A program made the translations under genes and the position numbers. The notes under the pieces were generated by a model. That model was not told the DNA's origin, made no database searches, and saw nothing but the letters and a program-made list of their open reading frames with translations. From Utricularia gibba (Eukaryota; Plantae; Magnoliophyta), in the NCBI GenBank assembly GCA_002189035.1, contig NEEC01000011.1, positions 1,364,001 through 1,428,000 of the forward strand: a stretch of DNA of 64,000 nucleotides, written 5' to 3'. This document shows positions 3,404 to 53,884 of the stretch, piece by piece. How positions within the stretch are numbered: the stretch's first letter is position 1; the number at the start of each line of letters is the position of its first letter.

Positions 3404-5696
3404 ATGCAAGGTGTTCTTCAGTCAAGAGGGCTTTTTTCCTTTCCGTCTCACTCAAAGTCCAGAGCTTTCATTGCTCAGCCTCCACGTGAATTGGGAAACA
3501 GATTCTGTCCCTTGAATTCTTCGTTGAAATTCGATAGAATTTCTATTGCGCGTAATGGGTTTTCCAAATTTCATGGCTTTGTTGTTGCAAGACCACATTT
3601 TTCTGAAAGAAAGAGTGGGTTTTATCCTGTTTGTCGAGCGGAGGCTGCGGCTTCTGCGTCAGCTGATGGGGAGGCTTTGTTTGCAGAAAAGGAGTCGCCC
3701 AAGTTTCTGGGTATTGAGCAGGCGACTGTGAAGAAAATTGTACCTCTTGGGATGATGTTTTTTTGCATTCTTTTTAACTACACAATTCTCAGGGACACTA
3801 AGGATGTTTTGGTGGTGACAGCCAAAGGTTCCAGCGCTGAAATCATACCATTCTTGAAAACATGGGTGAATTTGCCTATGGCTATAGGGTTTATGCTCCT
3901 ATACACAAAGCTTGCCAATGTGCTGTCCAAAAAGGCTCTCTTCTACGCTGTTATCGTTCCTTTCATAGCCTTTTTTGGTGCTTTTGGGTTTGTGTTGTAT
4001 CCCCTAAGCCAATATTTCCACCCCACAGCCCTGGCAGACAAGCTGTTGAACGCTCTTGGTCCGAGGTTTCTTGGACCTCTTGCTATCATGAGGATCTGGA
4101 GTTTTTGCTTGTTTTATGTTATGGCCGAGCTTTGGGGCAGTGTGGTTATCTCTGTTCTGTTCTGGGGCTTCGCTAATCAGGTATTCATTTGTCTTTTCTA
4201 CTAATCCTAAAACTGATATCCAAAAGCAAAACGGTATGGTTGATTAAAAAACTCTCCTACGTAACCGTCGGATTCTTCCTAGTATGTTTCTTGAATGACT
4301 CATGATTGGATACTTTGTGTTTCTTAGATCACCACTGTCGAGGAAGCCAAGAGATTTTATCCTCTTTTTGGTTTAGGAGCCAATGTTGCTCTTATCTTCT
4401 CCGGTCGAACTGTGAAATATTTCTCCCAGCTGAGGCAAAATCTAGGACCGGGAGTCGACGGCTGGGCCGTCTCACTCAAGGGGATGATGAGCATTGTGGT
4501 GGTTATGGGGCTGGCTATCTGCGGCCTTTATTGGTGGGTCAACCGCAACGTTCCTCTACCAACTCGCAGTTACAAAAAGAAGGTAAAATTCGTACTTGAC
4601 CAACAATGCTGCTTCTCTACATTGGTTGCATGAGTCATTCAATTCTTTCTTCAAAATTTTCCTCAGGAGAAGCCGAAAATGGGGACAATGGAGAGCTTGA
4701 AGTTCTTGGTATCTTCAAAGTACATCAGGGATCTTGCCACTCTGGTTGTAGCCTATGGTATTAGCATCAACCTTGTGGAGGTTACATGGAAATCGAAACT
4801 CAAAGCTCAGGTAAGAATACCGGTTTGTACTTCGTTGATAGTCCCCTGTCACTCACATGAATCCGCCATTAATGTTTTTGCTGGTTGCACTTCAGTTCCC
4901 AACGCCGAATGAATATTCCTCCTTCATGGGGATTTTTCAACTGCAACTGGCATAGCGACTTTCACCATGATGCTCCTGAGCCAATGGATCTTCGGTAAAT
5001 ACGGTTGGGGTGTGGCTGCAACCATCACACCTACCGTCCTGCTGCTCACCGGAGTTGGCTTCTTCTCCCTGATCCTGTTCGGTGATCCTCTAGCTCCTGC
5101 TCTTGCGAAGTTCGGCATGACTCCCCTTCTAGCAGCAGTATACGTCGGAGCATTGCAGAACATTTTCAGTAAGAGTTCGAAGTACAGTTTGTTCGATCCC
5201 TGCAAGGAAATGGCTTACATTCCTTTGGATGAGGACACAAAGGTTTTCTACTTTCCACCCCTTTTTTCTTCCTCTAAATTCCCTGTGTTCATCCTAGTAA
5301 TCAGTAATTCTTCGGTCTCAGGTGAAAGGAAAAGCCGCGATCGATGTTGTCTGCAATCCTCTCGGAAAGTCGGGAGGCGCTCTGATACAGCAGTTCATGA
5401 TTCTGAGCTTCGGTTCACTGGCGAACTCGACTCCCTACCTTGGCGGCATTCTTCTGGCGATCGTGCTTGCCTGGCTAGCCGCGGCCAGATCGCTGGATGG
5501 GCAGTTCACAGAGCTCAGGCGAGAAGAAGAGCTCGAGAGAGAAATGGAGCGTGCCAACGTGAAGATTCCGGTCGTGTCTTCAGGGGAAGGCGGTGAAGAT
5601 GGCTCCCTACTCCCCGGTGGGACGGCTCTAAACCCGAGCAGGGGCGAGCCATCAGCCACACCTGCATCTACTACACCTAGGAAAGCATCAAGCTGA
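3404..5696 (+). CDS. NTT1: Plastidic ATP/ADP translocator (NTT/AATP), 5 exons, one apparent -1 frameshift
   Basis: Exons 3404-4180, 4328-4582, 4667-4810, 4896-5242 and 5322-5696, all with GT-AG borders. Motifs: transit peptide, KKIVPLGMMFFCILFNYTILRDTKDVLVV, YVMAELWGS, SKYSLFDPCKEMAYIPLDED, KGKAAIDVVCNPLGKSGGALIQQ. One base is missing at GGGG 4928-4931 (MG-DFSTATG). Confidence 0.95.
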
Positions 5697-13572: not shown

Positions 13573-16632
<3,060 letters not shown>

Positions 16633-28901: not shown

Positions 28902-29549
28902 TCACACGATTCGGTCCAATTCTCTTTCGAGCTCGTCGGCCCAGTCCGCCTCACCGAAGCCCTTTAGTGCTTTGCTCAGGACCCGGCCCAAGTAGTCGTC
29001 CACTTCGCACCCACTCCTCTTCATCATCTGGTAGATCCTGACCGTTGATTCCTTCCTCCCGGCGCCGACCACCGCCATCACCAGCCGCAGCAGTCCCTTC
29101 GTCTCGATGATACCGCTTCCGTCGGCCTCCAATTCTCCGATCACCGAATCGATCTCTTCAGCCATCCCGTTCCTCGACAACGCGAGGACCAGCTCCGCGT
29201 ACGTGTCGAGGTCGGCGCCATACTCCGAGCGGAGGGCGGAGAAGGCCAATTTGGCTAGGGGTAACTGGTCCTGGCGGAGGAGCTCCTTGTACGTGGCGGT
29301 GAGGTCTGATTTGAGGAGGCGGTAGAGGAGTTGTGTAGGGAGATTGCCGGCGTCGGTTTTGTGGGCGCGTTTTAGGGATTGGATTGTTTGGATTGCTTCG
29401 CTGCTGAGGATCCGGCCTTTCGATGGCTGTGGCCGGTGGTCACGCCGACCGCATCTCACGATGTAAATACTGCGGCTGGGTCTCTTGACGACGACGGCGG
29501 CCGTGAAATTTTGGAGCAATGTGAGGCTAGTACCGGCGGCGGCAGCCAT
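28902..29549 (-). CDS. THA8: THYLAKOID ASSEMBLY 8 (short PPR, plastid group II intron splicing factor), intronless
   Basis: Intact ORF from ATG 29549: transit peptide ending IVRCG, KGRILSSEAIQTIQSLKRAH, LLKSDL...KELLRQD, AVVGAGRKESTVRIYQMMK, VDDYLGRVLSKAL. Matches THA8 (At3g27750) from memory. Confidence 0.88.
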   Translation of the reverse strand: MAAAAGTSLTLLQNFTAAVVVKRPSRSIYIVRCGRRDHRPQPSKGRILSSEAIQTIQSLKRAHKTDAGNLPTQLLYRLLKSDLTATYKELLRQDQLPLAKLAFSALRSEYGADLDTYAELVLALSRNGMAEEIDSVIGELEADGSGIIETKGLLRLVMAVVGAGRKESTVRIYQMMKRSGCEVDDYLGRVLSKALKGFGEADWADELERELDRIV

Positions 29550-30445
29550 TTGGTGGTGGCACTTGTGCGGCGGAACATCGAAATCCAAGATAAGAACCGT
29601 GCTGAGTGCTGGGTGATGTGTCTAAGGTAAATGACGGAAGTGCCCTGCCGACCCGTTTCTTTCATTAATCAATCGAATTGAAGGATTTAAAATCGAAAAC
29701 TTGGAATTGATGTTTTTTTCCCAAGTTTTTGGTACGAACAAATGAGTTTAGATGATTTTAATTATAGGATATCATTAATTTCTAAAAAAATATTTATTAA
29801 AATGATTCCTACTTAATTGTTCAACATTAACAACAAATCCGAAATTTGAGAATCTTTTCCTTGTATCTTTGTTTATGATTTATTGTTTTTGACTGACGAG
29901 TGTGAAATTTGGCCGATGTATTATTTAGAGTTTATTAGAAAATTAATCATTTTTCCACATGTGTTTGAAAAAATTGGTCATTATGTGTAATGTTTTACCA
30001 AAATGATCATCTTGTCATCATAAAAAAATAATATATATTTTTATTGAAATAACCTTATAATAATATGAATTAAATTTGATATATAATATTCCAATTTCAT
30101 AAATTATATTTTTTAAAAAAATAAAAAAATAACTAAAAAATGATTAAATATCTAAAAATTTTCTTTAATTTTTTATCTTAGTATTTTTTTAATAAAACTT
30201 GATAAATTATTTCTAAAATATTAATTCAAATAAATTTATACTAACATTTAAAAATAAAATAAATATAGCAAGTATAAAGTATAATTAAGATAAATTTAAA
30301 GTGGTGTTTGGTAGATATTTTTTTTATTATTTAAACATCCATATATTAATAATAATATTTAAATTATATTATGTTATATGGTAACATTTCCTAATTTAGA
30401 GTCATATTACAAATCCTAATGTTTCCATATTTCAATGGAAGTGAG

Positions 30446-30455
30446 TATATAAAAA
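30446..30455 (+). promoter_or_regulatory. TATA box of PAM2-RING copy A
   Basis: TATATAAAAA 67 bp upstream of ATG 30522. The paralogous copy B has TATAAATA at the same position (~38155). Confidence 0.6.
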
Positions 30456-30521
30456 GGTTGTTTTCGACAGGAATTCTTCACACGACTCAGCCTGAGCCCC
30501 TCTTGCCGACTTGTTTTTCCG

Positions 30522-30795
30522 ATGCATCCCCTGGCCGCTCCTTTCGTGCCTGCGCCTTTCCCGATGAATATCCATGCTCCTCCATACGTGCCACTAAGTT
30601 TCAGGCAGTCCATGCTTCCACAGATATCTGAAGCTCCTTACGGGTTGGATCCCCTGGCCCCTCCATTCGTGCCTGCTCCTTTCCCGATGAATATCCATGC
30701 TCCTCCATACGTGCCATCAAGTTTCACACAGTCCGTCGTTCCACAGATTTCCCAAGCTACTTACGGGTTGAATCCTGACGCTCCACCCTTCGTGT
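30522..30795 (+). repeat. 123-bp (41-codon) coding tandem repeat, ~2.2 units
   Basis: Units start at 30522, 30645 and 30768. The sequence cctttcccgatgaatatccatgctcctccatacgtgcca is identical in units 1 and 2. Confidence 0.92.
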
Positions 30796-31255
30796 CACGT
30801 TTCAGAGGCTTTTGGTGCTATGTGCTGATTCCTCGTAGTGAGAGTATTTCCTCCGATGAAGAACCCGAGGTTCTGGACAAACCCATCGTTGAGGGCCATG
30901 AGGTTGGTTCGAACCAGAGGAGCAGCGAGACGGAGGACGCGGCCTTCGCGGAGGAGATCGGCGAGGAGGAACCTGCACATGACGAACATCAGGAAAAGTT
31001 GCTGAGGAGGTATCAGAGGATACTAATGGAGAGCATGACACTGAAGAACAACTGGGAAATTGAAGCCATTGATGAAGACGGGCAGTCCAACATCTGCGTC
31101 GTTTGTCAGGAGGGCCTCTGCGACGGCGGCATGATCGGAATCCTGGACTGCCAACATCAGTTTCATTCCGCATGCATCAAAAAATGGCTGGAAGCTAAGA
31201 GCAAATTCCCCTCTGTCGCACAAGAGTCAAGGTTTCTCTGAACCGTCGTCGTTGA
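30522..31255 (+). CDS. Intronless protein with five PAM2-like motifs, an acidic linker and a C-terminal RING-H2 (copy A); one-base frameshift at the last CxxC
   Basis: N-terminal MHPLAAPFVP, MNIHAPPYVP, LDPLAPPFVP, MNIHAPPYVP, LNPDAPPFVS. RING is C-VV-C-x14-C-Q-H-QF-H-SA-C-IKKW-x6-[C]PLC. The ORF as given stops at 31241; adding one base near 31207-31211 gives ..K(C/F)PLCRTRVKVSLNRRR* ending at 31255, as in paralog B. Confidence 0.85.
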
Positions 31256-34149
31256 TCACCATGTGGGTGGATATTCTTGCAATCAAATCTAGGGATGACA
31301 TTCCGGTTTCAAACCACAAACTACAATACAGCAATCAATAACAGAATTTGCAAAACAAGGAAATGTGCAGACAATTACCGAGCTTTGAAAGCCCACTAGA
31401 AACCAAAGCATCCGCTGACCAAAAAAAAATCGGTGTGTTGGAACAAGGAATGAAAAGGATATAGCAAAGGCACTTCCCGTAAAATTTTGAGGAGATTCTA
31501 CTGTTGTGAAAGTCGATTTCAATACAAGAGACTGCAGAAGATGTTACAAACCTGTTTCCCTGATCATCTTTTCGTCAACGTGACACGCTTTGAAAATGAT
31601 TCCAACTGTTCCACCTGAAAAATGAACCCCACAAAAGGCAAAATGAGAAGAGATTGTGCTTTCCTCGACGACTCGAGTGCAACAACATTAAGAGAACTGA
31701 GTACGCAATGGACAGAAATCATTTCCAGAGCCTCTAGCTTCAAAAGATAGAGGGATGAGGAACACCGGCAAAATGTGGTAGAACCCAGAAGACGGTTTCC
31801 AGAAGCATCATTTTCAACAAATGGATGACAACAAAAAGTACATCGACGTAACAAAAACCATCGCGCAGTCATCATGATTCTGCACAACCCAGAACACGAT
31901 TCACCCCCCATTTGAGGAGTGGCCACAAGCCCATTTGCCAACAAACTCCTACTCAAAAATTCTCCATCGTGGGAATTGCTGGAGGATGATTATCCAATGA
32001 AGGACTCCGAGAACCCTCGCATGGCCTCACCTCCAGAAAAATGCGAGTTTCATGAAGACTGTCGTAGCTCCGAGAAGACCAACACACTCATTCGAGAACT
32101 TGGGTCTTATTGCGCTGGACAGAAGCCCAACACAGACTTCACGAGTGTTGGACTCACGCCCCAGCTCACCCACCCAAGCCCACAGCCCAAAACTACATGT
32201 ACATAAAGACAACGCCGGCAACGCCTCTTCCAACCGATGTATGAGTTAATTAGTATTTTACATGTGTTAGAGTTTTTTATTTATAATTTATTTAAACTTT
32301 TTTTTTCTAATTTTTAAATTACTTTAATTTTTTATTTTTATTTGCAAAATATCTTAGATTTTAGGGCTGAATTTGGTAAATTAATGGGTTGGAAGAGAGA
32401 GATTGACAAAATAGCATAACTTTTGGTTTTATTGATATTTTAAATTAGCTATAACTTTTCATTTGTAATTTACTGGAACTTATTGTTCTAATTTGTAAAT
32501 TACTTATTTTTTATTTTTCTTTATAAAATGATTTAGATCTGGAAATTCATTTGTATATAGTGCAAAAATAAGTTTAATACCACAAATTATATTTTTTTTA
32601 TGAAATCTATATTTTTTTATGTTTAAATAATATCCTAATTTTTATTTTCATTTATAAAATACAACATTTTTATTAAATTCTAAGTATTATATAATAATAA
32701 AAATCTACTTTAAATTAATATTGAATTCCTAATTTAATAGAATTATAAAATATCTATTAATTCACTTTTTTAAAAAAATATTGGATTGGTTGCCTAATTT
32801 AACAAGCAACACTAGGGTTCTTTTTGCTATCTAACCATACTTTCATTGATACATTTTGAAAACTAACCATACTTTTTAATTTATTAAATATTAATCATTA
32901 TATATTCATTTTGTAAATTAATAAATAACAATGCATGTATTTTTATTTTTTAATTAATTTCTACTTACATATATAAATAGTATAATATAATTATTTTAAA
33001 CTTTTAAAATATAAATAATTATATTTTTAACATTTATTCAATATTCAATACATTTATAAGGAATAAATTTATTTTATATAACACAATAAAAATATGAATT
33101 TATCATTTAGTATAATATAATGGAAACTTACAATTAAGAGTAGTTTATATTTAGGAAAAAACCTTGATTTCATATTTCATTTGAAAATTAGTTATGTTAG
33201 ATTGCTTTATTTGTAAATTACCCTATATTTTCAGTTTTTAAAATATTTTATTATACAAATAATTTAAATATTACTTTTTAATATAATAAGATATTTATGT
33301 ACCAACATATTTTCATTATCAAAAAATCAATTTTCTTTGATTAATAATCTTTCACTCAATATATTTATTATATATGAAACATATAAAATTAAATGTTTTT
33401 TTAAAAAAATTCGAAATAACATAAATTTAAAAAAAAATTATTCACAGTGTGACTTGAATATTTTTATAAAATGAATAAATAAAATCTAAAAAGCTATATA
33501 CAACATATTTAAAAACTAAATAATTTCACATAATTCATAATATTTATTACTCCATAACAAAACTGTTATTGTTATTGGTGAATAAAAATATATAACATAT
33601 TTACAAATATCTACAATCGTTATTATCATTTACAATTTATACTTTTCATATAATAAATTAAATTTTAATGAATATAAACATGAGTGCTTATAAAGAAAAA
33701 AATGATTTATTATAAAATTAAAATATTTCGAGTTAAAATATAATAAATAAAAAATATTATCAATTTTGATTAAACATATGATTTTAATTTTTTCATAATC
33801 AATATTAAATATGGGTAAACTATTTCTTAAATAATAAAAAATAGCTAATTTGATGTAACAATAATGAAAAGAAAATTAATTCAAGTAAACTATTTTTTTA
33901 CTTAAATTTTTAATAAAAAATAGCTAATTTGATGTAACAATAATTTATAAATTAATTAAAATAATGAAAAGAAAATTAATTCAAGTATGAAAAACGATTA
34001 AAACATAAAGTATAAATGATGTAATACAAATAATAGTATTCAAAAGATTAAAATGAATGTCTAGTTTTAAAAAAAATAACAATAATCAATATATATAATG
34101 CTCAATAATGCGTTTATAGATTTGTCAATGTGGATTAGTCTCATCAATT

Positions 34150-36361: not shown

Positions 36362-38231
36362 TATATTTTAATGAAAAAAGAAATTTCAAAGGAGAAATTA
36401 ATGAAAAAAATTACTTTAAATTGAAATACAATACCTATTATATGAGATTGCCAAATTCCACTTAAAGATAGCACCACTTGTAATCGAGAAGTTGAGAAAA
36501 AAGTAACACGATTTATAGTAAGTAAGACTTTTAACATAAAAGATGAGAACAAATATTTTATATTATATGATTGTGATTTATAAAGAATAATATGAAGATA
36601 AGTCATGGAAGATAGTGAGAACGGATATCATAAAAACCAAATGAATTATATAAATTTCAATTTGTATTTTAAATCTTTTTAAACTTTTTTTCTTATATAA
36701 TATTTAATTTTTTTATTATCTCATATTTCAAAGATATTACTTTAAAAAATTTATATACAAAAACCACATTAATAAAATGAAATAACTGAATATTTTAAAA
36801 ATCCATAGCTGGGCGCTGCTTGTTAAAATAAACAATCAATCCAATAATTTTTTTTAAAAAAGTGAATTAATAGATATTTTCTAATTTTATTAAATTATGA
36901 ATTCAATATTAATTTCAAGTATATTTTTATTATTATATAATAGTTGAAATTTAATAATAATTAAAATTTAATTAAAATATGGTATTTTATAAATGAAAAA
37001 TGAAAATTAGGGTATTTTGTAAATATAAAAAAATTAAGGAATTTCATAAAATAAAATATATAATTTGTGATATTAAACTTATTTTCGCATTATTGTATAA
37101 ACTAATTTATAGATCTAAGTCATTTTATAAAGAAAAATAAAAAATAAGTAATTTACTAATTAGAACAAAAAGTTTCGATAAATTGCAAATGAAAAATTAT
37201 AATGCATATAAAATATCAATAAAATAAAAATTTACAGTATATGTCAATGTCTATCCTTTGATACATGTATTTACCAAATTTAGCCAAAAAGTTATGATAG
37301 ATTGCAAATGAAAAATTGTAATCTATGTAAAATATCAATAAAATAAAAGTTACGGTATTTTGCCAACTTCTTTCCTATGACACACGTATTTAGCAAATTT
37401 CACCACATATCTATTTTTCCGTACTAATACCCCCTCTAATCTATCAGTTAGGAAGCTTCTCTCTCAAAATTCTCCAATATTTCTCAATTTTTTAAATGAA
37501 AAACAGCTGATGCAATCAACAAAAGAAGTAGAAGCGATGAAAGTCTTCGCATATACTCCTTACCGAACTAGTTGGACACACAGAAAATAATAAATATCAC
37601 TAAGATAGCTTTAAAGTGCTGCTTAATAGATTGTATTTATTATTCAAATATAATATATATTAACTAGTTTAACAGTATATGCATATTTTATAAAATATAT
37701 AAAATACTTTGTTTTAATATTTTAAAACTCACGTTTTTGTTGAAAAAATCAAATTTTTAATTATTTATTTTAAATATAAATAAATAATTTATTTATATAT
37801 TTTATTGATAAATTCACATTATTGATCAATTGTGCGTTGCGGTGTTCTTTTTTTATGATTGTATTTATTGATCATTAGATTTCCATGAATGTTGGAAGAT
37901 GTAATTTTGGCACGTGTATTGATTTTTGTCTTTTTATTTCTATTTTTTATTATTCATTCTTCATAAAATCATGAAGATGTAGTTTTTATGTAGAATTACG
38001 ACCCATTAAGCGCTAATGAAATCCTAATTATATTATATAATATTTTAATTATATTATATTATATGTCAACATTTCCTAGTTTAGAGTCATATCCGTATCT
38101 GATTGCTAATCCTAATGATTCCATATTTCAGGGGAAGTGAGGCACCTGAATCCTTATAAATAGGGTTGTTTTTGCCAGAGTAACTCTTCACATGACTGAG
38201 CCTGAGCCCCTCTTGCCGACTTGTTTTTCCG

Positions 38232-38417
38232 ATGGATCCCCTGTCCACTCCTTTCATGCCTGCGCCTTTCCCGATCGGAATCCTGGACTGCCAACATCAA
38301 TTTCATTCCGCATGCATCAAGAAATGGCTGGAAGCGAAGGACAAATGCCCCCTCTGTCGCAAAAGAGTCAAGGTTTCTCTGAACGTCATTGTTGATCATT
38401 GTTTGAAATCCCTTTGA
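38232..38417 (+). CDS. PAM2-RING family copy B: 61-aa in-frame deletion derivative (one PAM2 plus the C-terminal part of RING-H2)
   Basis: MDPLSTPFMPAPFP|IGILDCQHQFHSACIKKWLEAKDKCPLCRKRVKVSL. Promoter and 5' leader align with copy A. The junction is ttcccGATcggaatcc. Confidence 0.7.
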   Translation: MDPLSTPFMPAPFPIGILDCQHQFHSACIKKWLEAKDKCPLCRKRVKVSLNVIVDHCLKSL

Positions 38418-39537
38418 TTACCAGATTTGTTCATCTGATGAGTTCCATGTATCATGAGATGAAAATTTGGCACATGAATTTGATTTTCTCCTCGTCTATG
38501 TCTTTTTTTTTTTTATTAATTGTTATCATTATCCATAATAAACATTAATGATGCAATAAAATCGTTTATAGGGACTTTTTGTGTGATCTTAATTTAACAA
38601 ATAGTCACCTAATGTCAAGTTTTATCATCACCCAATAGCATGTTGATACAAAATAAATCAGACTTATCAATAATGATCAATACTTGAACCTCCTTATAGT
38701 TAGTTTATAATTATCAGATTTTCCAAAATATAATTTACATTTAGTATGTCTTTTTTTTTCCATTTTTTATCCTATTTATTTTTTGCACATAATTTCATGA
38801 AACCGGATAATCAGTAGTTACTCTTACTCGAAGGTCGTATTTAGTTGATGTGAATGAGATAAAATTAGTTTTAATTTATTTGAGTTTAAATAAAGTTGAT
38901 GTATTGAGATTAATATTTTAATTAGTATTTAGTTATTGAGATTAAGTGGTTTTAGTAAAAATAAGGGAGGTTAATCATGGATTTATTTAAACATATAACC
39001 TAAATATTTTATAATTTATAATTCTCTTTTTAAATCTATATAATCTCATAAAGATTAAGTCACCTAAATTATGGGTTTAAGTTTTTGAAAAAAAAAAAGA
39101 AAAAATATTTTTTAAATTCAGCCTGAAATATTTTTAATCATATATTAATAATAATAAGCATATGACCTATTTAGTACTATCAAAATAATGAAACTAAATA
39201 TTGAATTGATAAATTAATGAAATGGTGCAAAATCGATAAATTTATTGATGATGAATAAAGAAAAAATATTTTCTCAAATATTAAAATCATTTACTTTTTT
39301 ATTTAAAGTTTGTTTCCTTGGATATTAATCATCTCATTTTTTTATCAATAAATTTTAAAGTAGTCTGATCAAATTTGATTATGTAATAATATATGGTAAC
39401 ATTTCCTAGTTTAGTGTAATTATTCCTTATCTGATTGCTAATCCGAATATTTCCATATATGGTAACTTGGTTTCGCCAACGGAATTCTTCACACGACTCA
39501 CAACCTAAGCCCCTTTTATCGGCGATTTGATTTTCCG

Positions 39538-39717
39538 ATGGATACGTACTTGCCTAGTTTCATGAAAGCCCCTTTTTGGATGAATCCCATTGCTCATCAG
39601 TACATTCCAAGTTCCGAAGCTCCTTATGGGTTGGATCCCTTGGCCTCTCCCTTCATGTCAAGTTTCAGTGTTTTGGTGCTATTTAAAATTTGTTGTAAAT
39701 CGTACATGAAAAAGTAA
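39538..39717 (+). pseudogene. PAM2-RING family copy C: PAM2-only 59-aa ORF
   Basis: MDTYLPSFMKAPFWMNPIAHQYIPSSEAPYGLDPLASPFMSSFSVLVLFKICCKSYMKK*. It shares the upstream module and leader with A and B but has no RING. Confidence 0.7.
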
Positions 39718-40289
39718 AAAAGATTAAAATTTGATCATATAAAATATTGTTATAAATAATTTCTCAATCCCTAATATTCAATAGCCTTTTTCATAATTAT
39801 TATTTTAATCTTAAAAATCAATCAAATATATATGTAAAACACGTAAACACTAATAGGTTTAAGATAAAAGGAATCAAAGTTACCACAGTGATTGAGTTGG
39901 GAACTTTGTACCCGACGGAATGGAAGGGGCAACCGTGTCACCAGAAGCCGACGAGGCTGGCCGTGCCGGTGATTAGATGGCTGCCGGCGGTGACTGTGGG
40001 ATGTAGTGTATGAAAAATGACGGATTTACCCATCACCTAGAGACTCCGAAGTAGAAGTACGCGAACTGCAGGGGATTCAATTTTGACTTGTTCCTGGAAC
40101 AACCAACACTAGCGTTGCAATTTTTTATTGGTGAAGCGTTATTTATATTTCAATAGCATTTAAATAAATGAAAAAAAAACTACAAACAGACATATTTATT
40201 AAACTTAAAGGTATGAATATCACAGGCCTGATTCGTGTATCATAAATCGGGACAAATGAAACACAAGACCACACAAGACAAGGAAGCAG

Positions 40290-44764: not shown

Positions 44765-45220
44765 AAAGCAACCAGGTGATCAACGATGATGACGGTTCAG
44801 AGAAACCCGTACTCTTGTGCGATAGAGGGGATACTTGTCCTTTGGTTCAAGCCATTTCTTGATGCATGCAGAATGATACTGATGTTGCAGTCTAGGATTC
44901 CGATCATGCCGCCGTCGCAGAGGTCTTCCTCACAAACGATGCAGATGTTGGGCTGCCGTCTTTATTAGCGACTTCGAGTTCCAAATTGCTCTTCAATATC
45001 ATGCTCTGCATCAGTATATTATGATACCTCTACACTAACTTTTCTTGATATGCATTATGTGCACCTTCATCCTCTGTTTCTTGCCAATCAACTTGGTTCT
45101 CCTCCACGTGAAGGAGGTGGTGTCCTCCATCTCGCTGCTCCTCCAGCTTGAACCAACCTCATGGCCCTTAACGATGGGTTTGTCAAGAACCTGAGTTCTT
45201 CCTAGGAGAAAATACTATCC
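44765..45220 (-). pseudogene. PAM2-RING family copy D: degenerate linker plus RING fragment, no PAM2 part
   Basis: Aligns to A 30840-31260 (gacaaacccatcgtt.agggccatgaggttggtt, gacctctgcgacggcggcatgatcggaatcct.gactg) with stops, frameshifts and Cys-to-Tyr changes. Confidence 0.85.
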
Positions 45221-45439
45221 GAAAATTTATGTGGAATTTTTGAGAAGGCATGGACATACCATATTTCTAGTTGAAAATGGTTTTTAACTAGTTTATATGG
45301 AATGTCAATTCATTAACTTTAATAGTTTTGAATGGAAGTTGGGTATTACACACACATAAAGTTCTAATTTGTCATATTGAATTATACTTCCGGAGGATCT
45401 CTAAACCCAAAAAGTCTACGAGAGTGTGCAAATCCATCC

Positions 45440-45750
45440 CAAAGGGGCATTTGCTCTTAGCTTCCAGCCATTTTTTGATGCATGCGGAATGAAACTGATG
45501 TTGGGAGTCCAGGATTCCGATCATGCCGCCGTCGCAGAGGCCCTCCTGACAAACGATGCAGATGTTGGACTGCCCGTCTTCATCAATGGCTTCAATTTCC
45601 CAATTGTTCTTCAGTATCATGCTCTCCATTAGTATCCTCTGATACCTCCTCAGCCACTTTTCCTGATGTTCGTCATGTGCAGGTTCCTCCTCGCCGATCT
45701 CCTCCGCGAAGGCCGCGTCCTCCGTCTCGCTGCTCCTCTGGTTCGAACCA
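45440..45750 (-). pseudogene. PAM2-RING family copy E: near-identical to A 30905-31211, truncated at both ends
   Basis: GSNQRSSETEDAAFAEEIGEEEPAHDEHQEK...CIVCQEGLCDGGMIGILDSQHQFHSACIKKWLEAKSKCP then unrelated sequence. The third Cys is changed to Ser. Confidence 0.88.
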
Positions 45751-45765
45751 TCTACATTTAACAGA

Positions 45766-46216
45766 TTTGCTTTGAATCGAGGCTGAGGATCAAATGTTTT
45801 ATGGGGTTGTGATTCTGCGGCTTGGTTGAATGCTTTGCATTTTCTATGGCACGGTGAACTTTGGGTCATTCTGTTGACTTTATTAAGCTGTTGCCCTATG
45901 TTTCTTTCCAGCGTAGCTCATGACAGTATTGTTGAAGGAGCACCACAGCAGAAGAATGTGGACATTGTGCGTGTGAGTATAGTAACTTTGATCCTTTCTG
46001 CTCATTCTTTTTTCAGTGGTGTTATTATACTTGATCATTCCTCAGGTTCAAGGGGTTCATGTTAGCTCCGCCGATGTAAGGATTCAACAAGGAATGGCTT
46101 ATGCTCTGGCCCAGATGCAGAAGGAAGATTGCACTGGAAATTTCCGATTAGTAGAATCACAATTTGCAAACTATCTCGTCCCAGTCATTCCAAATCGTAC
46201 AGACTTGGGCCAGTGA
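45766..46216 (+). pseudogene. Orphan 3' end of an unidentified spliced gene
   Basis: Exons 45912-45972 and 46046-46216 join in frame over a GT-AG intron: VAHDSIVEGAPQQKNVDIVR|VQGVHVSSADVRIQQGMAYALAQMQKEDCTGNFRLVESQFANYLVPVIPNRTDLGQ*. A probable upstream exon lies at 45766-45853. The 5' part is absent. Confidence 0.6.
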
Positions 46217-46479: not shown

Positions 46480-49400
46480 TCAAACGGGGATGAAAGACCT
46501 TTCATGATTTTCTTCAGGTCTACAAGACTTCGTACTGCTTAGGAGAGGGAAAACGTCATGCTCTTCTCTAATGCTGCACACTGGAGTCTGTAGCCTTTGA
46601 CTGCACTGGAGTAAGATATGCAACGCATCTTTCATATGCGGCCTGTTTAAGGGGATCTATTTGTACATACCAATCCCAACTTCAGCACTGTGCTTATTTC
46701 CTCCATATAATGTGATTCTTTTACTTCCTCATCCAGTATGTCATCTATTGGCCTTCCCTGCTGAGCCACATGGCGCCACACCCATTCGGCAAGTGATGAC
46801 CGTTCATCTCCATTGTGAGCTTCTCTTCCAGTTACCAACTCAAGAAGTACTACTCCAAAACTATAGACGTCTATCTTCTCATTTACACGTCTTGTATGAG
46901 AGTACTCTGAGATGAAGTTCATGGTTGAAAGGGACAGGTTATCAGGTTAAAATGCTTGAAAGTCAGTAAGGGGGAGAAAAAGAAGATGATTATTACCTGG
47001 AGCCATATAACCAAATGAGCCCGCGACAACAGACATTGTATCAGGCTCTCCGGTGTTCATCAGCATCCTTGCAAGCCCAAAATCTGAAATCTTTGCATTG
47101 AAATCTGAATCCAGGAGGATATTGCTTGACTTCACGTCTCGATGGATTATTGGAGGCGAGCAGTGGTGGTGCATATAGCAGAGGCCTTGAGCAGCTCCAA
47201 TTGCAATGTGCAGCCTTTTTGGCCAGTCCATGAGATGAACTGAACTTGCGTTGCTGATAAATCGCCTCTTGCTGCGATGAAGCCATGTGTCTAGGCTGTG
47301 GTTCTCCATGTATTCATAAACCAGAACCTGTGACTTCTCCCCTGAGATGCAGCAAAGCAGTTTGACGATGTTTGCATGCCGGATCATCCCAAGAATTCCA
47401 ACTTCTGCATGGAATTCCTTCTGAAGTTTTCTATCCAACTTTGTGCTGTTCCGTATCTTCTTAACAGCAACATACTCATCTGACCTGTGCAATGGGACAC
47501 GGTAAACGCTCCCTGATCCTCCTTTCCCGACTAGATTATCATCAGTCAAACTTTGCAGGATGTTTGATTCAGTGAAATTCAGCTTGTTAAATGAAGTCAG
47601 CTTCCAGTCGGAATCAGTCGAATGCACAGCCTTTCTGTAGCATCTGAACACAAAGACTGCATACAGCAATGCCAAAAAGAATGCAACTGCAGCTAGACTC
47701 GAGATGATTGGAGTGAAACTTGATGAACGACCTCTTGATCTCCCATTTCCTTCAACACAACTGTTTATGCCGAGTGATCGTGTATTGGAACACAGTCCAG
47801 CATTGGAAATGAAACTGTTGTCATAAGCTGCATTCTCAAACTCAGCTGGGATCTGCCCAGAAAGCAAATTATGAGAAAGGTTGAGATAAGACGGCATCAA
47901 ATGCCCAAGACTGGGGGAATTTGGCCTGACAACTGATTCTCTGACAAGTCCAATGCTACAAGGTCTGGTAGCTGGCCTAACAACGAAGGGATTGTGCCCG
48001 AGATGTGATTTCTGCTGAGATTTAAAGTTGCAAGAGATCTCCAGGAGATTATTGTTGGAAGCGGACCAGAGAGTTGATTCCTGTCAAGCAAAAGAACTGT
48101 TAAGAGTTGGAGAGCTGTCAGAGCTTGAGGTATTTCACCGCTGAAAGAGTTGTTGCTTGCCCTGAGGACCTTCAAGCTCTCCCACGAAGATATCCCTACG
48201 GGGATTGAACCCGAGAACTGGTTATCCATCACCTCGATGAGCGATAACTTGGGGCTCACCACTTCTGGAAGCTGACCGGAAAACAAATTGTTGCTTAGCA
48301 TCAAGTATTCTAAATTTGGTGCTCTCCATAACCCATCGGGGACACTGCCTGACAGCAAGTTATCGTGGACTCGAACAATTGTCAGGCTATCGCAATCGTT
48401 CAGAGATGATGGGAGTTCACCAGTCAAATGATTCTCAAAGGCTACCACCCCTACCAACGCTTTGTTTATGCACAGGTTCTGGGGTAATCCACCCGAAAAA
48501 TTGTTGGTAGAGACTTGGAACGTTTCAAGTTTCGAGTGTAGGCCGAACTCTGGTGGTAATTCACCATACAGGTTGTTGTTGAATACTGAGAAATCTCTTA
48601 GACTTGGCAGTCTGCTGATACTGGATGGAACTTGGCCTGATAATTGATTGAAGAACAAAGCCAGACCAGTGAGAGTGGTGATATTTCCAATCCCATCAGG
48701 GATTTCTCCTGTCAAGGAATTGTTAGAGAGATCAAGAACTTGCAAGTTCAGTGATTCTATTCTCCCAGGAATAGGACCAGAAAGATTGTTCTTGTACAAG
48801 TACAAGAAAGTCAAGTTTTTTAGAAGAAAAGTGCCACTAGGTATGGTTCCGCTTAGACCATTTGTAGAGAAATCCAGGGATTCAAGAGCAGACATATTCC
48901 CAATATCAGCAGGGATTTGTCCCACCAGATTTGTTTGTGTCATCCACAAGTTCCTGACTTTCTTCAGCTGAGTGAAGCTCTGTGGAATTGGCTGAGGCAA
49001 AAACGGGTTGTAGCTCAAAACAAGCTCTTCAAGATTTAAAAGGTTACCTATTTCCGCTGGAAGCGAGCCGTTTAACAGATTTGAATCCAAATGAAGACTT
49101 TTCAGGCTGGACAACCCCCCAATCTCCAGTGGCAAATCCCCAGTAAAGTTATTAAAGGTCAAGATCAACGACTCCAGCCGTGACGAGAGGCGGTTTATAT
49201 CCCCCGGAAGGACGCCCACCAGGCTGTTATACGACAGGTTCAAGTGCTGAAGGATGGTGCAGTTGTAGAAAACAGTAGGGAATGTTCCAGGGATCAAGTT
49301 CCAAGAAAGATCAACGTAGGACAGGTTCGTAAGATCACATATTGCCCCTGGTACTGTCTGACTTATCGTCATGTTGATGATCCGGATGGCGGTGACGGCG

Positions 49401-49606
49401 CCACCGGAGGAGCAGGTGATCTCCGGCCAACTGCAGTGGGCTGTCGACGGCGTCCAATGGCTGAGAGACGGCGGATTGAACCAGTGAAGCTTGAGCCCCA
49501 TGAGTATACCCTGCTCCCGCCGAGGATCAACTTCCACACCTTGGGACCTTCCATTGAAGGGGAAGAAGAAGAGAAGCAACAAACAAGGTAGAAAATTACA
49601 CCCCAT
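46480..49606 (-). CDS. HSL3: LRR-XI receptor-like kinase, HSL3/NUT (At5g25930)-like, two apparent -1 frameshifts
   Basis: Signal peptide, PPSLSHW..HCSWPEITC cap, ~20 LRRs, AYDNSFISNAGLC, TM helix, WKLTSFNKLNF, GKGGSGSVY, VAVKKI, HRDVKSSNILLD, DFGLARML, one intron after GSFGYMAP|EY. Breaks at 47904-47906 and 46651-46654. Confidence 0.9.
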
Positions 49607-51496
49607 CTCTTTTCCCAGCAGAAGCAGCTCACGCCTCCATTTTCTTATACCCCCTATCCCCACGTGCAGATTATGTTATTACAGGATCTGCTTCTAGAAG
49701 GGCTTAGACCAAACGGTAATTGCGTCTACTTCTAGAGGCGCTTTTAGTTTCTGTGCGTGCAGACAAATTACAACAACATCAGCTTCTAGAGGGAAGCCGT
49801 CAAATACGACCATCTGGGTGCCAAAATTCTGCTTGTTCCCACCGGTCGCTGAAGTTTCTAAGAAGCAGCCCAGCCCTCAGACTCGCCTGGAAAATCTTGC
49901 CTTTTTTAATTTACATTATCCGCAAAAAAAAAAAGATAAATTTCATACTAACATCTATGATATATTGATTCTCCTGTTTTATATAAATTTATATACTTGA
50001 TATAGGGATTCACATGCACACATACATACATATGTATTTATGTGCACGTCTTTAATAAATTTTAATTAAAGATTTTCTTATTCAAGTATATAATCATTAT
50101 TTTATTTTATTTCATTAGTAGTTGTATGGATTATCTTTTTTCATTGAGATTAGAGATATATTATTCGTTAATATTAATCTTAATATTTCTGATATTATAT
50201 TTTTTTAAAATTGATTAATATGATATTTAAATATTTACATGTTGATTTATTATTTTATTATTATTAATTAATTTTTATATTTTATATTTCAAGTTAATTA
50301 TTTGTTATTATATAATTTTATCTTTTAAAATTTATGAATTTTTAAGAAGAAAAATTCATAGGAATATGAACAAACAATAGTCTTATCAGTCCGTACTTAT
50401 AATTTTCAAATTAATAAATAAATATTCTTGAATAGTTCCAAAAATCAAGTAGGCAATTATTTAATATTCATTCTATAATAGTTTGACTCTACGTAAAAAT
50501 ATTTGATTACTTTCGATTTAAAAATTTGTTTGATTTACAGAATAAAATAAACACAATTTATTTCCTAAATTCTAACTAAATATATGTATATAATTTATAA
50601 AAACCCATCTCCTGTGTGTATTTAGTATAAAAAGATCTCATTATTTTCAATTCATATTTTTCATATAATTAATAGGAAAAAATTGTTTATTAAGAATAAT
50701 AATGTAATTTATGTTTAATAAATTCAATTTTTAATTTTAGCAACTAAACATATTACTTCAATAAACAAAATCCATCCATTAAATATAATTTTCATCTAAT
50801 CCTTAATAATCTAAACCCTTTAAAATATGAAATTCTCAACCAAATAAGCTTTTAATAGTGTTTGAATTGAGATTATAATTCGGTTGTTGAATTGCCAACC
50901 TAACATTGGTTGAATTAGGGATTTATGTTCTTGTCAATTATGTTGGATTTAACTTGTCAAACCCTTGTACAATTAAACATTCTAGATACAACTCTCAAAT
51001 TGTCAACTATATCAATCCAAAGACACACTTACACTTTTATCAATCATCACTACACAAGTGAGGTGAATGGTTATAACATAATTGAAATTTTTGATAGAAT
51101 AAAAATTGATATATTTTCATTGAATTGATTTATATTTAAAATATAAAAAAGAGAATTAATTTTTTTAGTACATAACACATTTTATCAGACTAATGTTTGA
51201 GAATTATAAAAAATATGAATATAATTATAAATTTATATTATTATTTTTTAAAAGAATGGTGTCAATATAATTGTTTTTCAAGCATTGCAGCATAGAGAGA
51301 AGGAGTTTCGATAGTTGGTTAAAAGAAGGCCTCCGTGATCGACGTCACTTCCCACATTCATATGTAGTAGTGGACTGGTTCTTCACTCCCCTAAAAGTCG
51401 AGAGAGATGCCACTTGCCTGCGATGAACATGATGATAGCATACGCATCCACCCACTCTCCCCAAAGCGCGATAGTATTTTCTCCCCGGAAAAACTA

Positions 51497-51712: not shown

Positions 51713-51899
51713 CATTTTACGTGTGTACGAATCAGACTCACATTTTGCTTTATTTTTGTCTTGATCCCATTAGGAGTTAGAATTTACGTGATTTAGATTT
51801 TTTATGAGATTGAGATTTGATTTATGAATAATTGAATAATCATTTAAAATAACATTTTACATAGTTGAGATTTTGATGTTTTTTTATTCTTCGTGTTCC

Positions 51900-53884
51900 A
51901 TTTACAACAAACTTCACATAGCACCAAAACCCTGTGAAACATGGCATGAAGGGAGCGGCCAGGGGATCCAACCCGTAAGGTACACAGCTTCGGAAATCCT
52001 TGGATCCATGAACTCTCTGAAACTTGGAATGTATGGATGAGCAATGGGATTCATTCGAAAAGGGGCTTTCATGAAACCAAGCACGTACGGATCCATCGGA
52101 AAATCAAATCGACAAAAGGGGCTTAGGTTGTGAGTCGTGTGAAGAATTCCGCTGGCGAAACCAAGTTACCATATATGGAAATATTCAGATTAGCAATCAT
52201 ATAAGGAATGATTACTCTAAACTAGGAAATACTACCATATATTATTACATAATCAGATTTGATCAAACTACTTTAAAATTTATTGATAAAAAAATGAGAT
52301 GGATAATATCTAACGAAAGAAACTTTAAATAAAAAATTAAATGATTTTAATATTTGAGAAAATATGTTTTCTTTATTCATCATCAATAAGTTTATCGATT
52401 TTACACCATTTCATTATCATATTATTTCAATATTTAGTCTCATCATTTTGATAATACTAAATAGGTCATATGCTTATTATTATTAATATATGATTAAAAA
52501 TATTTCAGGCTGAATTTAAAAAACTATTTTTTCTTTTCTTTCAAAAACTTAAACCCATGAATTAGTTGGCTGAATGTTTATGAGATTATATGGATTTAAA
52601 AGGAGAATTATAAATTATAAAATATTTAGGTTATATGTTTAAATAAATCCATGATTACCTTCTCTTATTTTTATTAAAACCACTTAATCCCAATAACTAA
52701 ATACTAATTAAAATATTAATCTCAATACATCAACTTTATTTAAACTCAAATAAATTAAAACTGATTTTATCTCATTCACATCAACTAAATACGACCTTCG
52801 AGTAAGAGTAACTATTGATTATCCGATTTCATGAAATTATGTGCAAAAAATAAATAGGATAAAAAATGGAAAAAAAGACATACTAAATGTAAATTGTATT
52901 TTGGAAAATCTGATAATTATAAACTAACGATTAAGGGGGTTCAAGTATTGATGATTATTAATAAGTCTGATTTATTTTGTATCAACATGCTATTGGGTAA
53001 TGATAAAACTTGGTATTAGGTGACTATTTGTTAAATTAAGATCACACAAAAAGTCCCTATAAATGATTTTATTGCATCATTAATGTTTATTATGGATAAT
53101 GATAACAATTAATAAAAAAAATAGACAAAGACGAGGACAAAATCAAATTCATGTGACAAAAATTAAAGAAATTTTTAAACATTTAATCATTTTTTTAGTA
53201 ATTTTTATTTTTTAAAAAAATATAATTTATGAAATTGGAATATTATATATCAAATTTAATTCATATTATTATAAGGTTATTTCAATAAAAATATATATAT
53301 TATTTTTTTATGATGACAAGATGATCATTTTGGTAAAACATTACACATAATGACCAATTTTTTCAAACACATGTGGAAAAATGATTAATTTTCTAATAAA
53401 CTCTAAATAATACATCGGCCAAATTTCACACTCGTCAGTCAAAAACAATAAATCATAAACAAAGATACAAGGAAAAGATTCTCAAATTTCGGATTTGTTG
53501 TTAATGTTGAACAATTAAGTAGGAATCATTTTAATAAATATTTTTTTAGAAATTAATGATATCCCTATAATTAAAATCATCTAAACTCATTTGTTCGTAC
53601 CAAAAACTTGGGAAAAAAACATCAATTCCAAGTTTTCGATTTTAAATCCTTCAATTCGATTGATTAATGAAAGAAACGGGTCGGCAGGGCACTTCCGTCA
53701 TTTACCTTAGACACATCACCCAGCACTCAGCACGGTTCTTATCTTGGATTTCGATGTTCCGCCGCACAAGTGCCACCACCAAATGGCTGCCGCCGCCGGT
53801 ACTAGCCTCACATTGCTCCAAAATTTCACGGCCGCCGTCGTCGTCGTCAAGAGACCCAGCCGCAGTATTTACATCGTGAGATGC
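51900..53884 (-). repeat. Composite inverted duplication of 29451-30172 joined to ~38466-39700
   Basis: The reverse complement of 53884-53165 matches 29451-30172. The reverse complement of 53160-51900 matches ~38466-39700. The junction is tttctttaatt|tttgtcacatgaatttg. Confidence 0.92.
51914..52096 (-). pseudogene. PAM2-RING family copy F: PAM2-only 60-aa ORF, inverted duplicate of copy C
   Basis: MDPYVLGFMKAPFRMNPIAHPYIPSFREFMDPRISEA..., frameshifted before the third motif. Confidence 0.75.

Follow-up and report, generated by a model that had tools for sequence, protein, structure and literature searches.

Introduction

Can a plant RING ubiquitin ligase be tethered directly to poly(A)-binding protein (PABP)? 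The question is raised by a short intronless gene in a 64,000-nucleotide (nt) stretch of the Utricularia gibba genome (assembly GCA_002189035.1, contig NEEC01000011.1, positions 1,364,001 to 1,428,000; hereafter the window, whose own numbering is used throughout). A preliminary description, made by reading the letters of the window, had placed at 30522-31255 a candidate E3 ligase in which five PAM2-like motifs, an acidic linker and a full RING-H2 finger follow one another. PAM2 sites follow the consensus LNxxAxEFxP, in which the main determinants are Leu3 and Phe/Trp10, which sit in two hydrophobic pockets, together with Asn4, which stabilises a turn, and the small Ala7 as a further determinant (PMC7356810).

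Here, we report that the open reading frame (ORF) at 30522-31241, which we call copy A, probably belongs to a young, lineage-restricted, multi-copy family, in which it has recently been disabled (pseudogene, or RING-dead at best). Because its finger is truncated and the family around it is decaying, copy A most likely encodes no working ubiquitin ligase.

The RING-H2 finger of copy A

The finger had been described as a full RING-H2 ending in C-x10-C-x2-C. Ligands 1-6 are indeed in frame, with the spacing C192-x2-C195-x14-C210-x-H212-x2-H215-x2-C218, but the last two are not: C7 is a Phe, and C8 is reached only through a 1-nt frameshift. In frame, the protein continues from C218 as IKKWLEAKSK-F229-P-S-V-AQESRFL to a stop codon at 31241, with zero Cys after C218. 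The string PLCRTRVKVSLNRRR, which ends with the stop at 31255, belongs to the +2 frame. Since the end coordinate first given to the gene is this +2-frame stop, the preliminary description had read across the frameshift; by-eye reading of a sequence can silently repair such a lesion.

When the copies of the family are aligned at this point, copy A reads AAAT-TCCCCTCTGTCGC (AAAT-TCCCC...), copy D reads AAATGCCCCCTCTGTCGC / AAATGCCCCC (K-C-P-L-C-R) and copy F reads AAGTATCCCCTCTATCGC. Two differences are thereby seen in copy A: TGC has become TTC, and the sequence is one base short of copies D, E and F.

Profile and structure comparisons end at the same place. The Pfam zf-RING_2 profile, proposed earlier as a check, scores above its cut-off (32.9 bits against 27.3, E 8e-8), but the match is partial and covers profile positions 2-38 of 44. 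A phmmer search against PDB chains aligned the finger with RNF38 (E 2e-6), Arkadia/RNF165 and others; these alignments stop at residues 230-231, and in that with RNF38, F229 occupies the place of ligand C7. The eight-ligand C3H2C3 arrangement of two cross-braced zinc sites, sought with the pattern C-x2-C-x(9-39)-C-x(1-3)-H-x(2-3)-H-x2-C-x(4-48)-C-x2-C, was not found in copy A, which has six ligands in frame. Among the other family sequences, the feature is kept in copy D and in all contigs of the RNA and DNA runs described below.

The second zinc site of a RING cross-brace is made up of ligands 3, 4, 7 and 8, the last two completing it. With both C7 and C8 lost, the second site cannot form, and neither folding nor E2 binding is expected; judging from this architecture, the RING of copy A should fail to recruit an E2. 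The proposed E3 ligase activity is thus unsupported at the copy A locus, C7 and C8 being absent from the second zinc site as assembled.

A decaying family in the window

Copies were located by tblastn and blastn searches of the window with the ORF. The family is represented by one full-length copy (A) and five truncated or stop-containing fragments (C, D, E, F and G; Table 1). Copy D has a 61-amino-acid (aa) ORF with an intact RING end, KCPLCRKRV, and was produced when 570 nt were deleted in frame at a GAT microhomology; the resulting joint (30562>31133) is also present in DNA runs X1 and X2. Copy F contains in-frame stops, a frameshift in the RING and Tyr codons at both C7 and C8, and its exact sequence recurs in X1 (loose ends at 31207 and 31247). 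Copy E, the nearest copy to A, carries a C210 to S change; its similarity stops just past C7, and its 5' part is unrelated. In X2, up to three distinct contigs are found per site, and over the ORF the depths add up to several times the value of the flanks.

The copies were also compared codon by codon, with the reservation that the counts are small. Copies A and E differ by five non-synonymous changes and one synonymous change, one ligand having been lost on each side, and with copy F as outgroup the frameshift and three of these five non-synonymous changes fall on the branch of copy A. Over the second half of the RING, copies A and D differ by three synonymous changes and one non-synonymous change. 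Together with the comparison of the tandem units below, these counts fit an ancestor that was constrained in its motifs as well as its RING, the constraint having been relaxed recently in A and E.

Two other origins of the fragments were considered. Copies G/C (5') and F/E (3') might be exons of an intron-bearing parent, as suggested by the ttctcctag before F; this reading is rejected, because F/E and G are separated by a leucine-rich repeat (LRR) receptor kinase gene and the X7 RNA is unspliced over 30824-30840. Transposon capture (Pack-MULE, Helitron) is unsupported, as the unit is flanked by AT-rich chance pairs and not by terminal inverted repeats.

Two structural features adjoin the copies. 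An inverted 1.3-kb duplication of 90% identity (38466-39768 / 51831-53160) carries copies C and G. A breakpoint between two repeat families lies at 31260-31262; beyond the RING stop codon, some genomic copies run on with GCTTGAAATCCCTTTGATTA, like copies D and F, while others, together with the X7 RNA contig, follow copy A to about 31322.

Evidence from RNA and DNA contigs

Is the lesion a property of the locus or of the assembly? Logan contigs of RNA runs X5 and X7 and DNA runs X1 and X2 were mapped on 29400-32400. Over the neighbouring gene (29400-29560) the contigs of the RNA runs show 0-1 mismatches, whereas intergenic DNA has no cover in them; both runs thus behave as RNA of a near-identical genotype. 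The family is transcribed: X7 yields a 781-nt contig over 30558-31322, with 35 mismatches and 10 gap letters relative to copy A, and X5 a 748-nt contig with 16 mismatches and a further 3, 42 and 80 nt missing. Expression, one of the checks suggested in the preliminary description, is found for the family but not for copy A itself, as no contig in X5 or X7 matches its coding sequence at 99% or more.

All contigs crossing 31207 have T>G and, behind 31207, an inserted C, which are exactly the two changes that restore KCPLCR. The insertion accounts for all of the depth in X5 (10.7 of 10.7) and X7 (9.49 of 9.49) and for 13 of 18.2 in X1 and 250.8 of 283.8 in X2; the remainder in X1 is copy F itself, recognised by its loose ends. 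The frameshift might accordingly be an assembly error, and the locus might encode an intact five-motif PAM2-like RING-H2 ligase ending in KCPLCRTRVKVSLNRRR, with TGCCCCCT (TGC and five C) at the lesion in place of the assembled TTCCCCT. The intact form in every independent contig crossing 31207, the position of the deletion in a C homopolymer and the otherwise preserved ORF, start codon and TATA box all speak for such an error. We nevertheless consider it unlikely. The contigs diverge from copy A by 3-7% at many other sites, so they are paralogues (about 94-97% alike) and do not represent the copy A locus. The lesion combines a Cys-codon substitution with an indel, which is more than a plain homopolymer miscount; in motif 5, too, copy A stands apart from the other copies (P to S), and it has its own share of the changes that separate it from E; and its sister copy E is clearly broken.

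Several points do weigh against regarding copy A as a disabled gene. The lesion is seen only in the assembly and is reproduced by no contig in the four runs, and when the 62 nt spanning it were queried against indexed sequencing runs, none was listed. X1 seems to be the reference genotype, since its flanks and copy F are exact, yet its local cover is about 3-4x and patchy, so that missing support for the lesion in this run does not speak for a mistake in the assembly. Loss of one C from a run of C is a typical long-read error, whereas the adjacent G-to-T difference is not. Copy A still has its TATA box, its conserved start codon and a frame that stays open over a long distance, and a RING-less product could come from it; contigs drop rare variants, so the lack of a locus-specific RNA contig does not prove silence.

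The expressed paralogues give a further reason for caution. In X7, the motif frame is interrupted by a C>T change at 30744 (CAG to TAG), and upstream of it the contig has no indel. In X5, the first motif reads MDSLAVVHFP, and the absence of 30970-31049 (80 nt) shifts the sequence to the +2 frame, which stops ahead of the RING. Both RNA paralogues thus appear to carry lesions of their own, and the whole family may be dead; these lesions were taken from difference tables and not from full contig sequences, and 41 differences lie outside the tables. The 80-nt gap in X5 could also be viewed as an antisense intron (CT..AC, i.e. GT..AG on the minus strand), but the contig has the sense leader and ATG, and a genomic deletion is simpler.

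The PAM2-like motif array

Do the repeated motifs of copy A amount to PAM2 sites? All five 10-residue motifs quoted in the preliminary description were found with the same sequences (Table 1). The spacing of L-x3-A-x2-F-x-P, to which each was said to conform, is matched in the relaxed form [LM]x3Ax2[FY]x[PS], with M, Y and a terminal S among the residues. Ala7 is kept in all five motifs, one or two of the four main determinants are missing in each of motifs 1-4, and Pro stands at position 9 throughout, where the consensus has E. Pfam PAM2 (PF07145), another suggested check, gives an equally divided answer: motif 5 alone only just reaches the gathering cut-off of 20, with 20.1 bits, but the whole protein remains under it (17.2 bits, E 0.004) and motifs 1-4 have no match.

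The motifs did not arise as five independent events, as the array consists of a tandem duplication of a 123-nt unit (30523-30645 / 30646-30768, 88% identical) and a partial third unit that supplies motif 5. Motif clustering is beyond chance and no by-product of composition. In composition-preserving shuffles scored with the relaxed pattern, a 41-aa unit with two matches turned up in 17 of 100,000, and five matches in the ORF in none of 100,000; in the six-frame translation of the window there are seven strict matches, all of them inside family copies. Between the tandem units, changes in the 23 motif codons are confined to two x positions and two synonymous sites, and the 18 spacer codons carry six non-synonymous changes; the PAM2-defining residues are all kept while the spacers drift. 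At 30795 in motif 5, T>C restores the terminal Pro (S to P, giving LNPDAPPFVP) in both RNA contigs and in about half of the DNA depth; the Ser of copy A is a further sign of relaxed constraint.

Taken at the level of sequence, the PAM2 likeness is real but weaker than first claimed, with one credible PAM2 and four weaker variants, and MLLE binding by the array is plausible. It could also be argued that the motifs are no PABP ligands at all, being a proline-rich repeat derived from an MBR/RHG1A-like disordered N-terminus or serving another partner, in an otherwise ordinary RING-H2 E3 family. The failure of Pfam PAM2 for four of the five motifs and for the whole protein and the invariant Pro at position 9 are in keeping with this, as is a BLASTP alignment with the MBR-like protein P0054, in whose N-terminal region NFYNHRFIPSS pairs with MNIHAPPYVPSS and YELDPHQPLP with YGLDPLAPP. 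In a protein-language-model search with residues 1-105, most neighbours were plant RING E3 clusters, including MBR1. The top neighbour in that search, however, was a PAM2 cluster, albeit with a weak score of 0.50; among 150 proteins, the N-terminal likeness to those of the MBR type reaches no significance (E 0.065 or worse); none of the four main determinants is missing from motif 5, which also attains the Pfam cut-off; and the positions conserved between repeat units are exactly those that define PAM2. We therefore think it improbable that the motifs have nothing to do with PABP.

Still less probable is that the truncated product of copy A is functional, as a RING-dead binder of the PABP MLLE domain that competes with, or is a decoy for, intact family members or other proteins with PAM2: it retains a long ORF, promoter elements and the motif array, and modular derivatives such as copy D keep open frames, but no RNA contig is at least 99% like copy A although the adjacent gene matches in the same runs, motif 5 (the sole canonical one) is without its terminal Pro in copy A, open frames this long persist by chance for some time after a lesion near the 3' end, and no conservation evidence for the truncated form was found.

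Promoter and surroundings

The remaining parts of the earlier gene model stand. The gene is intronless, the ORF and its TATA-like box were both found on the plus strand (Table 1), and the acidic linker between the motifs and the RING-H2 is present in the 239-aa product. The box is kept as TTATAAATAGGG in copy D, and reads CCCTATAAAAAGG in other genomic copies (loose contig ends); copies C and G have lost it. Conservation of the copy A start codon and 5' leader extends to D, C and G. An Rfam scan of the window gave no match, a single-sequence AlphaFold2 model of the ORF was uninformative (mean predicted local distance difference test score 38.8), and exact-protein look-ups found neither the ORF nor the neighbouring gene on record. 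Just upstream of the promoter, an X2 DNA contig skips 232 AT-rich bases, 30126-30357 (joint 30125>30358), which may be a small insertion, possibly a miniature inverted-repeat transposable element, missing from another copy or accession.

Table 1. Coordinates of copy A, its component features and the other family copies in the window
Feature	Position	Strand	Description	Basis
Copy A ORF	30522..31241	+	239 aa, intronless; PAM2-like array, acidic linker and truncated RING-H2	ORF listing, Pfam scan
TATA-like box	30446..30457	+	TATATAAAAAGG, 65-76 nt 5' of ATG	Read directly
Motif 1	30522..30551	+	MHPLAAPFVP; M for L3, H for N4	ORF translation; no Pfam PAM2 match alone
Motif 2	30564..30593	+	MNIHAPPYVP; M for L3, Y for F10	ORF translation; no Pfam PAM2 match alone
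Motif 3	30645..30674	+	LDPLAPPFVP; D for N4	ORF translation; no Pfam PAM2 match alone
Motif 4	30687..30716	+	MNIHAPPYVP; duplicate of motif 2	ORF translation; no Pfam PAM2 match alone
Motif 5	30768..30797	+	LNPDAPPFVS; only motif with L, N, A and F	Pfam PAM2 20.1 bits, E 4.5e-4 alone
Tandem duplication	30523..30768	+	123-nt (41-codon) unit, two motifs per unit	88% identity
RING-H2 ligands 1-6	31095..31175	+	C192, C195, C210, H212, H215, C218, in frame	Translation, Pfam, PDB alignments
Lesion	31206..31211	+	TTC (F229) for TGC (ligand C7); one base lost from next C run	Copy alignment
Out-of-frame tail	31205..31255	+	IPLCRTRVKVSLNRRR and stop, with former ligand C8; stop codon is the end first given to the gene	+2 frame
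Copy D	38029..38417	+	Promoter, leader, one degenerate motif (MDPLSTPFMP), second RING half	tblastn/blastn
Copy C	39378..39717	+	Leader and two degenerate motifs only; TATA region deleted	tblastn/blastn
Copy F	44775..45219	-	Linker and RING; 78% nt identity	tblastn/blastn, alignment
Copy E	45372..45869	-	Linker and RING; 97.7% identical to 30905-31215	blastn
Copy G	51915..52253	-	Leader and motifs only; TATA region deleted	tblastn/blastn

The expressed neighbouring gene is a minus-strand ORF (28902..29588) with no Pfam family. Its first ~46 codons and upstream region are included in an inverted 730-nt duplicate of 98% identity (29451-30173 / 53158-53884), which abuts the duplicate of 38466-39768 at 53158/53160; the copy A and copy G loci thus share one upstream flank. 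Just downstream of the ORF, 31377-31414, 31552-31613 and 31906-31947 match one spliced X5 RNA contig (777 nt, depth 52) at about 93%. Its first junction is CT..AC (GT..AG on the minus strand) and its second CC..CC, its flanks are not in the window, and it has no Pfam match; the matching segments resemble a piece, or a paralogue, of a multi-exon gene on the minus strand.

The LRR receptor-like kinase (46947-49663, minus strand) consists of two abutting ORFs in different frames, one of 588 aa with LRRNT_2 and LRRs and one of 317 aa that covers positions 4-166 of the 263 in the Pkinase profile; the split may reflect a frameshift, a short intron or truncation of the kinase. Two further loci look like ordinary plant genes: exons of a TLC-type ATP/ADP transporter (3404-5596, plus strand; two ORFs, which match Pfam TLC at 10-175 and at 337-430) and a fragment of a kinesin motor (14556-15110, minus strand).

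A possible role for intact members

If copy A is a disabled gene, what might its intact relatives do? The idea of a PABP-docking E3 survives, within reason, only for intact paralogues or an ancestor. In its intact form, the family would encode a short intronless protein of roughly 240-290 aa in three parts: a disordered N-terminal array of PAM2-like short linear motifs, whose number would vary through 42-nt and 123-nt duplications and through losses; an acidic linker between array and RING; and a C-terminal RING-H2 nearest to the MBR/RHG1A/BIG BROTHER-type and RNF38/Arkadia-type fingers. The mechanism suggested in the preliminary description is also the most likely one for such members or their ancestor: the canonical LNPDAPPFVP, aided by the weaker flanking motifs, would dock on the MLLE domain of PABPs, and the RING-H2 would bring an E2 to ubiquitinate PABP or neighbouring messenger ribonucleoprotein components. 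Copy A would then have left this state when ligand 7 became Phe and a one-base deletion moved ligand 8 out of frame, within a family that presumably evolves by birth and death and breaks into fragments by deletions, partial duplications and inversions.

That living members form a plant-lineage class of small E3s, in which a variable PAM2 array docks by avidity along the poly(A) tail and the RING-H2 ubiquitinates PABPs or their partners, is possible but doubtful. If members were intact and PABP-binding, they would be the first RING ligases of plants to be coupled straight to PABP, and a natural case of avidity tuning by expansion and contraction of a motif array, with a bearing on the control of mRNA translation and decay by ubiquitination, so far mainly a matter of animal Makorins. 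Copy A itself mostly illustrates the decay of a young gene family, and it is the family that merits follow-up.

Comparison with known systems

Does the architecture belong to any known family? A word-indexed search of 5.8 billion protein clusters gave no match to the whole ORF or to residues 1-105 (E up to 1), and no CID-type similarity to the N-terminal part was found there. A phmmer search of 1.84 billion representatives returned 484 proteins at E <= 0.001, none below 1e-30, whose best stretches all lie within or just ahead of the RING; the PAM2-like array is absent from the best 150 of the 484. Two metagenome scans found no relatives. The genome's own proteins are apparently outside these libraries, so missing own-species paralogues are uninformative, whereas missing relatives from other plants are informative. 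The family seems confined to a narrow lineage, or else unannotated.

Across plants, then, the architecture search proposed at the outset met only generic RING-H2 relatives, and no plant protein with PAM2 and RING-H2 was found in the literature searched; the earlier impression that this is no well-described plant family is borne out by the literature and both large protein libraries. The PAM2 survey of Albrecht and Lengauer from 2004 may list some plant RING proteins.

The best matches of the RING and of the stretch just ahead of it include the MBR/RHG1A-like proteins P0005, P0006 and P0054 (27-38% identity, E 1e-11 to 4e-6). A signature of the MBR/RHG1A type recognised in the preliminary description, here G-x-L-x-C-x-H-x-[FY]-H-x-x-C-I-x-x-W-L, is common to copy A, MBR1/MBR2, RHG1A, BIG BROTHER, RNF38 and Arkadia/RNF165. 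The assignment does not extend upstream of the finger, however: P0005, P0006 and P0054 share a pre-RING box, SYEELL...G..TGLSEE, where copy A reads HQEKLLRRYQRILMESMTLKNN, and a RING-H2 preceded by the SYEELLxLxExxGxxxTGLSxE box of MBR/RHG1A/BIG BROTHER proteins was not found in copy A. Unlike copy A, proteins of the MBR/RHG1A type are mostly longer and without a PAM2-like array.

Makorins provide a functional parallel that had been named, and this precedent agrees with the literature. A PAM2-like motif brings the RING ligase MKRN1 to PABPC1 (PMC6805484), Mkrn1 of the fly uses PAM2 to bind pAbp (PMC7001992) and MKRN3 ubiquitinates PABPs (PMC8053111); in this group the targets of ubiquitination are PABPs or factors next to them. 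Nevertheless, Makorins combine a C3HC4 RING, flanked by several RNA-binding C3H fingers, and the Makorin Cys-His motif with a single PAM2, whereas the family of copy A has a RING-H2, a motif array and no C3H: the Pfam scan gave no zf-CCCH match at E up to 10, there is no sequence relationship beyond the RING fold, and no Makorin was present among the matches that named their proteins.

Fungi offer precedents both for PAM2 and RING in one protein and for multivalent PAM2 arrays. Upa1 of Ustilago maydis has one PAM2 and two PAM2-like motifs together with a C-terminal RING that is dispensable in the assays reported (PMC4466420), and Upa2 is a multi-PAM2 scaffold (bioRxiv 10.1101/455378). Both are large endosomal proteins that are not homologous to copy A, and Upa1 additionally has ankyrin repeats and FYVE.

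Among plants, the MLLE partners are the CID proteins of classes A-D (ERD15/CID1; the ataxin-2-like CID3/4; CUE/SMR CID5-7; RRM CID8-13), of which CID3 and CID4 have two tandem PAM2 copies each (PMC4574140). Their LNPxAxxFxP-type motif, which binds the MLLE/CTC of plant PABPs, resembles the motifs of copy A; unlike copy A, none of the four classes has a RING (the survey text does not contain the word; PMC4574140). Human NFX1-123 binds PABPs via PAM2, and Arabidopsis NFXL2 is without the motif (PMC3207813).

By sequence, the family is thus no member of the Makorin, Upa1 or MBR families. Its intact architecture would be new, although the principle of docking a RING protein on PABP is already known.

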